From Macrostomum lignano (lineage: Eukaryota): a stretch of 64,000 nt of DNA. The DNA lies in the NCBI GenBank assembly GCA_002269645.1, contig NIVC01000326.1:434001-498000 (forward strand). Reading direction: 5' to 3'. Positions 8,933 to 27,647 of the stretch are shown piece after piece; positions within the stretch are counted from its first letter, which is position 1, and each line of letters opens with the position of its first letter. Both the position numbers and the translations under genes were made by a program. The notes under the pieces were generated by a model. That model did not search any database, had not been told where the DNA came from, and saw only the letters and a list, made by a program, of their open reading frames with translations.

Positions 8933-10249
8933 TCAGAGGAGGCTCGGCCGCTTGCAGAAATTGCGGGACACGATCGGCGGCCCGGAGCCCGACTCCAGCA
9001 GTTCCAGGCGGTCGCGGCAGGAGGCGGTGGCCGCAGAGCCCGCCACAGTGACATCTCTGAAGTCCCTGAAGCTGCACAGCCGCTGGAGCAGCTGGCGAGA
9101 GATGTCCACGACTTCTTCATTACTGCCGCCAGTGCCGATGCCCGGAGGTCGGCGATGGTACAGCAGCTCCAGGCAGCGGGTTGCCTGCTCAAAAAGCTGT
9201 CGCGCTTCGCCCAGAAGGCGACTTCGATGGCCGGAGCTGCCCGCCCCGGCGTCTCCGCCGTCAGCGGCCTCGTCGGCATCATTGACGAGCTCGGCGGCTC
9301 GGAGCTCAGCGAGGGCGGCGTCGACTTCCGCCACAGAGCGGCGTGACAGCTCTGCAACCTGGCGCCAGTCCTCGGCGGCCTCCTCCGGGTCGGCTGGCGC
9401 GGCTTCGGCGATTTGGCGCGCGGCACAGCGCAGCTGCCAGACGGTGGCCTCGGCGCTGGCGGTGGCGACCTCCAGCGGGCCCTGGCGGCGGGTCTCCAGC
9501 AGGCGGGCGGGCAGGAGGCGCACGGGGGCGGGCAGCGGCTCCTCGGTCTCGTAGAGTCTCAGCAGGCGGTGCCGCTGGCGTCTTCTTCGCGGCGCGTCGA
9601 AGCGCTGAAATCGTCGGACGTCATTGTACCGGTGATGGCGCATGGCGGACAGCGCTGAGAAGCCGCCGAAGCCGCTGCCGCCGCCGACCAGGCCGGGCAT
9701 GGGCGGTTCGGGCACCGGGGTCAGTGGGTACAGGCGGATGCGCAGGGCGGGCGAGTCGCAGCTTTGCGTGTCCGCAGCATCCGGGTCTTCAAAGATTTCT
9801 TCGTCCTCGCCGTCCGACTCGTCCAGATCTTCGCTAAAGGCGTCTTCAGCGCCGGCCAGCGCGGCGGGCAGCACGATGGCGCCATGCAGGAGGCGCTCGA
9901 GCCGCGCCGCCGCCTCCTCAATCGACGCACCGTCCGGGAAGGCGCAGACGAAGTGACGCGGCGCGTCTGTGGCGCCGGCTGCTCTGCGCAAACCGGCTGG
10001 CAGCTCGGCCTCGGCGCCACTGCGGAGCGCCGCCAGGTAGTAGGCCGGCGCGGGGCAGCGCCAGTCCGACAGATTTGGGCTCTGCAGCTCCTGGCACAGG
10101 CCCGACAGGCGCAGCAGCACCGCTCGCTCCCGCTTGAACTCCAGCAACCGGTCCTTCAGGTGCAGCCACAGCTCTTCCGTCAGCTGCTTGGCCTTCAGCG
10201 GGAGGCCGCCGGCGCGAAATCTCTCGCTGGCCGTCTGGAGGAGGCGCTC
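8933..10249 (-). CDS. DOCK exon 9 (DHR-2 lobes, stop codon)
   Basis: Acceptor CTGCAG at 10250; begins ERLLQTASERFRAGG, matching DOCK1 EQLYQEIIHYFDKGK; continues into ORF 8933..10147. Confidence 0.88.
   Translation of the reverse strand, partial: ERLLQTASERFRAGGLPLKAKQLTEELWLHLKDRLLEFKRERAVLLRLSGLCQELQSPNLSDWRCPAPAYYLAALRSGAEAELPAGLRRAAGATDAPRHFVCAFPDGASIEEAAARLERLLHGAIVLPAALAGAEDAFSEDLDESDGEDEEIFEDPDAADTQSCDSPALRIRLYPLTPVPEPPMPGLVGGGSGFGGFSALSAMRHHRYNDVRRFQRFDAPRRRRQRHRLLRLYETEEPLPAPVRLLPARLLETRRQGPLEVATASAEATVWQLRCAARQIAEAAPADPEEAAEDWRQVAELSRRSVAEVDAALAELRAAELVNDADEAADGGDAGAGSSGHRSRLLGEARQLFEQATRCLELLYHRRPPGIGTGGSNEEVVDISRQLLQRLCSFRDFRDVTVAGSAATASCRDRLELLESGSGPPIVSRNFCKRPSLL

Positions 10250-27647: not shown

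Follow-up and report, generated by a model that had tools for sequence, protein, structure and literature searches.

A minus-strand gene at positions 27647 to 8933 of a 64,000-nucleotide stretch of the Macrostomum lignano genome (contig NIVC01000326.1; this whole stretch is called the window below) raises the question of whether a protein descended from DOCK-family guanine nucleotide exchange factors (GEFs) remains a GEF. Macrostomum lignano is a free-living flatworm. GEFs of the DOCK-A and DOCK-B subfamilies are thought to be obligate partners of ELMO in vivo and to rely on one invariant valine in catalysis. The original prediction, made from the DNA letters alone, described the gene product as a highly diverged, ELMO-independent DOCK GEF that lacks the SH3 domain and the C-terminal tail. 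Our analysis supports the DOCK descent and both absences, and the last part of the catalytic domain had no significant similarity to any DOCK. The protein is probably an ELMO-independent scaffold derived from a DOCK protein, in which exchange would have been lost or be performed by a much altered catalytic lobe.

The gene model was built from stop-to-stop open reading frames (ORFs) and splice-site scans before any annotation was used. It runs from an ATG at 27647 (-) to a TGA stop at 8935-8933 (-) in nine exons with every junction in phase, giving a coding sequence of 4938 nt and 1645 residues. Seven introns have GT donors (one after CAT), and intron 5 has a GC donor (CAG/GCGAGT). The model was 100% identical over its full length to the GenBank protein PAA85468.1 (BOX15_Mlig003763g3), a 'hypothetical protein' of this species, which bears out the nine in-phase exons, the length of ~1640 residues and the coordinates first proposed. 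The basis of the Mlig_3_7 annotation is a genome-guided RNA-seq transcriptome; the gene ends come from spliced-leader and poly(A) reads (PMC5730564). The agreement is far beyond chance, and the nine exons are a real gene, Mlig003763, which is expressed according to this RNA-seq-derived annotation. GenBank and UniProt already list the protein, as a hypothetical 'C2 DOCK-type domain-containing protein', and no mention of Mlig003763 was found in the published literature.

Some annotation variants were also observed. The GC donor of intron 5 (21614-21638, -) was kept in three of three genomic copies of the gene. An alternative GT donor (AAG/GTCAAG) lies 18 nt upstream of it and is used by one WormBase model; it would drop six residues (VKIEEQ), and the choice between the two donors may be alternative splicing. 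The WormBase/UniProt models P0002 to P0007 are fused or frame-shifted predictions of Mlig003763 and were excluded as evidence. P0004 to P0007 (A0A1I8... entries from the older ML2 assembly) are fragmentary and frame-shifted, with no Pfam domain in any, and carry the misleading names 'Separase', 'PI3K/PI4K domain-containing' and 'Non-specific serine/threonine protein kinase'.

We searched Pfam with the full protein and obtained only DOCK-C2 at residues 293-410 (E of 1.4e-7), with a score of 32.1 bits that is 1.5 below the cut-off of 33.6 and a match spanning only the first two-thirds of the model. No DHR-2, DOCK_N, TPR_DOCK or SH3 match was found with the single exons or the full protein, and a phmmer search against Protein Data Bank sequences gave no matches. 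Thus, among the profiles named with the original prediction, DOCK-C2 was detected just below its cut-off, and DOCK_N and DHR-2 were not detected. An exhaustive HMMER search of 1.84 billion representative sequences with residues 464-1645 returned, at E < 1e-10, only M. lignano proteins. At E values of 8e-7 to 3e-4, it recovered eight proteins with the DOCK-A domain layout, among them DOCK1 of a cuttlefish, CED-5 and further nematode DOCKs. All eight carry DOCK_N and TPR_DOCK, and their matches fall on residues ~890-1280, the end of the ARM region and DHR-2 lobe A. No DOCK-C/D protein was among the matches of this search, and no PH or DOCK_C-D_N Pfam match was found in the protein even at E up to 10.

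The closest relative is encoded in the same genome: the paralog P0008 (PAA54466.1, BOX15_Mlig008420g2, 1814 residues), which is annotated only as 'SH3 domain-containing protein'. BLASTP aligned residues 77-1488 colinearly with P0008 residues 230-1576 at 28% identity (E of 2e-109). P0008 consists of an SH3 domain (residues ~17-75), a helical region, C2, DHR-1, ARM and DHR-2 domains and a PxxP-rich tail. Pfam gave it 78.5 bits for DOCK-C2, with TPR_DOCK and DHR-2 lobe A above the cut-off and DOCK_N and lobe C just below. By sequence, P0008 matched the structures of DOCK5, DOCK2 and DOCK1 at E values of 1e-74 to 1e-6, including the DOCK2 SH3-helical fragment 3a98 (solved with ELMO1), and no DOCK-C/D structure. 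A DOCK-A-dominated profile matched DOCK-A structures at 1e-146, as opposed to 1e-34 or weaker for those of DOCK-C/D. Against a profile of eight canonical DOCK-A proteins, the window protein scored 113.7 bits; with P0008 added to this profile, a single alignment of residues 258-1281, spanning the ARM superhelix, reached 261.7 bits. This alignment and the BLASTP match to P0008 also bear out the sub-threshold DOCK-C2 match.

Because P0008 forms a bridge, the protein aligns with the DOCK-A profiles and the outside matches are to DOCK1 and CED-5 types only, we infer that the window protein is by descent a derived member of the DOCK-A/B lineage and not of DOCK-C/D, as had been proposed. The genome also encodes a canonical paralog with an SH3 domain, so the gene is a strongly diverged, lineage-specific duplicate of a DOCK-A/B (DOCK1/CED-5-type) gene and not a free-standing oddity. 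The two paralogous genes have two of eight intron positions in common (before exon 4 and before exon 9). Word-based homolog searches with the window protein and with P0008 returned M. lignano entries only, and with cuttlefish DOCK1 as the query this search gave canonical DOCK1s, with no flatworm sequence among the 120 matches listed. An ortholog outside M. lignano was not found in these databases, which may simply lack other Macrostomum proteomes.

The exons (all on the minus strand) encode the pre-DHR-1 C2 domain, DHR-1, ARM and DHR-2 lobes A and B in the same order as in P0008. Exon 2 (26641-26902) encodes residues 42-128, which from residue 77 are homologous to P0008 from residue 230 onward, the pre-DHR-1 C2 region (BLASTP and tblastn). 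In Smith-Waterman comparisons with P0008, in which each region was set against 1000 shuffles, residues 77-290 gave a z score of 13.7. Exon 3 (25521-26082; residues 129-316) contains a Gly-rich low-complexity stretch followed by the start of DHR-1 at about residue 291, and exon 4 (22878-23756; residues 317-609) contains the DHR-1 (DOCK-type C2) core and the start of the ARM region (tblastn against P0008, E of 6e-17). The ARM region continues through exon 5 (21615-22052; residues 610-755), which ends at the GC donor, exon 6 (20513-20803; residues 756-852), with 44% tblastn identity to P0008 (E of 3e-13), and exon 7 (13547-14116; residues 853-1042), which was assigned by tblastn and profile alignment. 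Exon 8 (12248-12742; residues 1043-1207) holds the end of the ARM region and, by the DOCK-A profile, the first half of DHR-2 lobe A (from about residue 1100, at 12571). The region of exon 8 was the sole site of non-Macrostomum matches in the exhaustive search, and its predicted local distance difference test score (pLDDT) was ~90 in the AlphaFold2 (AF2) model described below. Exon 9 (8933-10249 including the stop codon, from the splice-site scan) begins with the second half of lobe A (10028-10249; residues 1208-1281).

At the N terminus, the alignment with P0008 starts at P0008 residue 230, past the SH3 domain and the helical region. These two parts form an ELMO-binding module of ~160 residues in DOCK2 and DOCK5 (PMC8294757). 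In all, ~160-230 N-terminal residues, comprising the SH3 domain plus the helical bundle that contacts ELMO in DOCK1-5, are missing from the window protein. Exon 1 (27524-27647) encodes residues 1-41 plus 1 nt between the annotated ATG at 27647 and the donor CAG/gtatgg, and the first 76 residues of the protein had no significant similarity to P0008. We considered exon 1 as a remnant of P0008 residues 183-205, with which it shares an 'AFK' patch, and rejected this match, as its score of 22 lay within the shuffle distribution.

The missing module could be an artefact of the 5' end, if SH3/helical exons belong to the true transcript but escaped annotation, are more than 36 kb away or are not in the assembly. 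Between the ATG and an in-frame stop 22 codons upstream of it are two AG acceptors, one of them in frame, that would suit such exons. The WormBase model P0002 does join an upstream piece here; however, this piece is a minus-strand ORF (30416-30967) among retroelement fragments and has no Pfam domain. Furthermore, SH3, helical and combined hidden Markov models (HMMs) found nothing in all six-frame ORFs of the window, including the 36 kb upstream of the gene (best E about 1), the helical-region HMM found nothing at the window locus (E of 0.5 or worse), and the 10 kb upstream of either of the other two genomic copies gave no match to SH3/helical HMMs. As a positive control, exon 1 of the P0008 gene gave 98 bits with the SH3 model, 176 bits with the helical model and 277 bits with the combined model. 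A tblastn search of the 64-kb window with P0008 hit the annotated exons only. Introns of M. lignano average about 1.1-1.4 kb (PMC5730564), and all three copies open with an exon that begins MSSGQDDG and have the annotated start in common. Taken together, these data make a 5'-end artefact very unlikely, and the absence of the module holds for the gene model, for the 36 kb upstream and for both other copies. The searches thus revealed neither an SH3-encoding exon joined to the gene nor a placement within DOCK-C/D.

A candidate spliced-leader (or cis) acceptor, read from the sequence, is the CAG at 27695-27697 (-), 48 nt upstream of the ATG. The spliced leader of M. lignano has an ATG at its end (PMC8629364). 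If trans-splicing occurs at this CAG, the leader ATG would be in frame and the protein would gain 16 residues, with nothing SH3-like among them. The DOCK-C/D proteins (DOCK6-11, Zizimin-type) naturally lack SH3 and do not bind ELMO. Unlike in that group, the absence of SH3 in the window protein is a secondary loss within the A/B lineage; apart from the absence of SH3 and the ELMO-binding module, the window protein resembles DOCK-C/D in the generic fold only.

The C-terminal tail is also missing, in agreement with the original prediction. The protein stops ~45 residues past its last predicted helix, and no PxxP motif was found in its last 130 residues, as opposed to at least seven in the tail of P0008. 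The PxxP tail of DOCK-A/B proteins recruits SH3 adaptors. Directly after the TGA stop codon (8933-8935, -) lies a tandem repeat of a 15-bp unit (8451-8904).

The three lobes of DHR-2 differed strongly in their similarity to P0008. Lobe A had a z score of 32, with 0% of the shuffles reaching the observed score, and aligned with DOCK-A profiles both with and without P0008. Lobe B (9407-10027; residues 1282-1488), which is diverged and contains an acidic insert and a Gly-rich insert, had a z score of 14.1 (0 of 1000 shuffles, 0%). For lobe C, the z score was only 1.9, and 5.3% of the shuffles reached the observed score; its place is taken by a helical region (8936-9406; residues 1489-1645) with no nucleotide-sensor motif and no PxxP tail. 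Against a profile of lobes B and C from 44 DOCK-A sequences, the window protein scored 3.2 bits and P0008 105.7 bits, and the 3.2-bit match was limited to an LP..R..P...PLE.A patch at the border of lobes B and C. Comparison of the C terminus with DOCK lobes B and C by hhalign gave a weak and partial match, with an E value of 0.047 without P0008 and 0.0012 with it. By these comparisons, conservation is clear for lobe A, lobe B can be recognised only by comparison with the paralog, and lobe C has no significant similarity. The proposed colinearity with DOCK1 therefore stands from the pre-DHR-1 C2 domain via DHR-1 and ARM to lobe A, but not through the whole of DHR-2.

In DOCK-A proteins, the nucleotide sensor reads G-[IV]-V-D-[PA]-A-V-x-G-G-x-x-N-[YF]. 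Its first G, its catalytic V and the second G of its GG pair were the same in 44 of 44 DOCK-A proteins; the other G of the pair was present in 42 of 44. Alignment with DOCK5 and DOCK2 identified the invariant V as the catalytic valine, which is essential for exchange (PMC8294757). P0008 keeps the key residues in its motif G-I-V-C-A-T-V-G-G-G-I-D-N-F. In the window protein, however, no instance of the motif (G[IV]V..AV.GG..N[YF]) was found within residues 1282-1645. The MAFFT alignment placed Leu1520 (9311-9313) under the catalytic Val column and showed the GG..NY stretch as deleted, and hmmalign left the lobe C segment wholly unaligned to the DOCK-A profile. GEF activity is doubtful, as lobe B is recognisable only against the paralog and both lobe C similarity and the valine motif are absent, and the 'GEF' label of the original prediction is not supported as it was given.

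The extreme divergence from all DOCKs and the loss of three functional modules might suggest a decaying relic, that is, a transcribed pseudogene left by duplication in a neopolyploid genome. The Mlig_3_7 assembly contains three copies of the gene, g3 (in the window), g2 (L002; PAA59074.1, 1675 residues) and g1 (L003), and all nine exons are kept in the three copies at 98-100% nucleotide identity. In g2, a 1-nt deletion in a C5 run (L002 ~23709, corresponding to window ~9528, codon 1448) shifts the frame, so that an out-of-frame tail rich in Pro, Ser and Arg takes the place of the last part of lobe B and the whole of lobe C, as decay would predict; it could be a real inactivation or, as it lies in a homopolymer, an assembly error. 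However, the ORF is intact over 1645 codons and nine exons in two copies. Between g3 and g1 we counted 35 synonymous and 15 non-synonymous differences, corresponding to a ratio of non-synonymous to synonymous substitution rates (dN/dS, Nei-Gojobori) of 0.154 (binomial p = 2e-10 versus neutrality). Lobes B and C alone had 6 synonymous versus 2 non-synonymous differences (p = 0.006). Because synonymous differences are in excess both in the whole gene and in lobes B and C, the gene, including its unrecognisable C terminus, is under purifying selection, and decay is the least probable of the explanations considered here.

The closest competitor of the scaffold reading is the view originally put forward, that the protein is an active GEF of the DOCK-A/B type that works on Rac or Cdc42 without ELMO and has a DHR-2 domain that is merely very diverged. 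Lobes A and B are indeed homologous to those of a canonical paralog, the C-terminal region is under purifying selection, and ELMO is dispensable for exchange in vitro (PMC8294757). Furthermore, an AF2 model based on a 10-sequence alignment that included canonical DOCKs (mean pLDDT 70; ~90 in lobe A, 70-90 in lobe B outside its two inserts and 60-75 in lobe C) resembled canonical DHR-2 domains. This shows that the sequence is compatible with a three-lobed domain; however, the fold was steered by the canonical rows of the alignment, which makes the comparison partly circular. A single-sequence AlphaFold model of residues 1043-1645 had a pLDDT of 43 and was unusable. Considering also the missing sensor motif with its essential valine and the insignificant similarity of lobe C to any DOCK, a conventional active GEF is rather unlikely, and lost or strongly altered catalysis is somewhat more likely.

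Several observations nevertheless weigh against the scaffold reading. Residues 1100-1645 of the AF2 model have a complete DHR-2-like shape; Foldseek matched it to the DOCK2 DHR-2 structure 3b13_A (E of 6e-14, template modelling score of 0.73) and ranked the DHR-2 domains of DOCK2 and DOCK5 best, ahead of DOCK9/10 and DOCK7/8. The three-lobed domain may thus persist, and exchange might still be possible with a Leu at the sensor position. The absence of the motif is firm, whereas the replacement of Val by Leu is not, given the unreliable alignment of lobe C. The constraint on lobes B and C shows that they have a role, which could still be GTPase binding or exchange. Finally, the evidence for the 5' end consists of the published annotation and negative searches.

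The protein retains both C2 domains (pre-DHR-1 and DHR-1), the ARM superhelix, the dimerisation lobe of DHR-2 (lobe A) and a lobe B that can be recognised. In the favoured reading, it would act as a DOCK-derived scaffold without ELMO, dimerisation through lobe A is probably kept, and membrane association via the C2 domains is possible. If exchange is lost, the protein would be a pseudo-GEF that may pair or compete with its canonical paralog; alternatively, exchange would be performed by the much altered catalytic lobe. More tentatively, we propose as one possible form of this scaffold a pseudo-GEF kept by selection, devoid of ELMO binding, adaptor binding and the sensor, which could heterodimerise with the paralog or bind Rho GTPases without exchange. 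Features of P0008 that are missing from the window protein are its SH3 domain, the helical region for ELMO binding, the sensor-bearing lobe C and the PxxP-rich tail. The nearest family that has been characterised is DOCK-A; the window protein shares the order of C2, DHR-1, ARM and DHR-2 lobe A with the DOCK-A proteins DOCK1 (DOCK180), DOCK2, DOCK5, C. elegans CED-5 and Drosophila Myoblast city, but differs from them in lacking the SH3/helical module, the PxxP tail and the invariant catalytic valine motif.

The surroundings of the gene are rich in repeats. Intron 6 contains a non-LTR (long terminal repeat) retrotransposon (15019-20253, +), antisense to the gene, with ORF1 at 15480-16547, an endonuclease plus reverse transcriptase (RT) at 16550-18811 and RNase H at 18649-20253 (all +). 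The RT is frameshifted, as the second and third of these ORFs overlap and lie in different frames. With 6396 nt, the intron is longer than in the other two copies (562 and 627 nt), which marks the insertion as private to the window copy. ORFs at 29700-31010 (-) and 24700-25100 contain short peptide motifs that also occur in the N-terminal part of ORF2 of this element, and it is the former region that P0002 wrongly joins to exon 1. Short-unit tandem repeats (4-20 bp, up to 324 copies) fill almost every intron as well as the sequence after the stop codon and give long spurious ORFs on both strands. Besides the repeat after the stop codon, they lie at 10283-12247, 12757-13512, 14130-14528, 20889-21474, 22202-22818, 23773-24661, 26227-26515 and 26946-27514.

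Upstream of the gene, an ORF of 245 residues (32821-33558, +) with a sub-threshold PAN/apple match (E of 5e-4) lies between the 5' end and a satellite. This satellite (39759-52430) extends over 12.7 kb with ~550 copies of the 23-bp unit CACCATGTCAAACATTAAAGAGC and is AT-rich with a strong strand skew. An ORF of 626 residues at 53001-54881 (-) is a fragment of an LTR retroelement, with a gag-like part (PNMA, zinc knuckle), an aspartyl protease and an integrase zinc-binding domain. Two further ORFs, at 58148-58906 (-) and 59517-60155 (-) with 252 and 212 residues, are alike by eye (LLSNHFY..., AAVL, DLLTWP, 'QLP.?WL..ATV..AAYL') and had no Pfam match; they may be a tandem pair of one family.

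These findings are limited in scope, as the gene is known from a single species, its protein had an earlier entry as hypothetical, and the statements about function are inferred. Resources for transgenesis and expression exist for M. lignano (PMC5730564), and with them the reading can be tested. If true, the window protein would serve as a natural test of which DOCK scaffold parts (the C2 domains, ARM and the dimerising lobe A) function on their own, and a candidate for the first DOCK pseudo-enzyme. A pseudo-GEF of this kind would be an inbuilt regulator of Rac signalling in this regenerating flatworm, or a scaffold for it.

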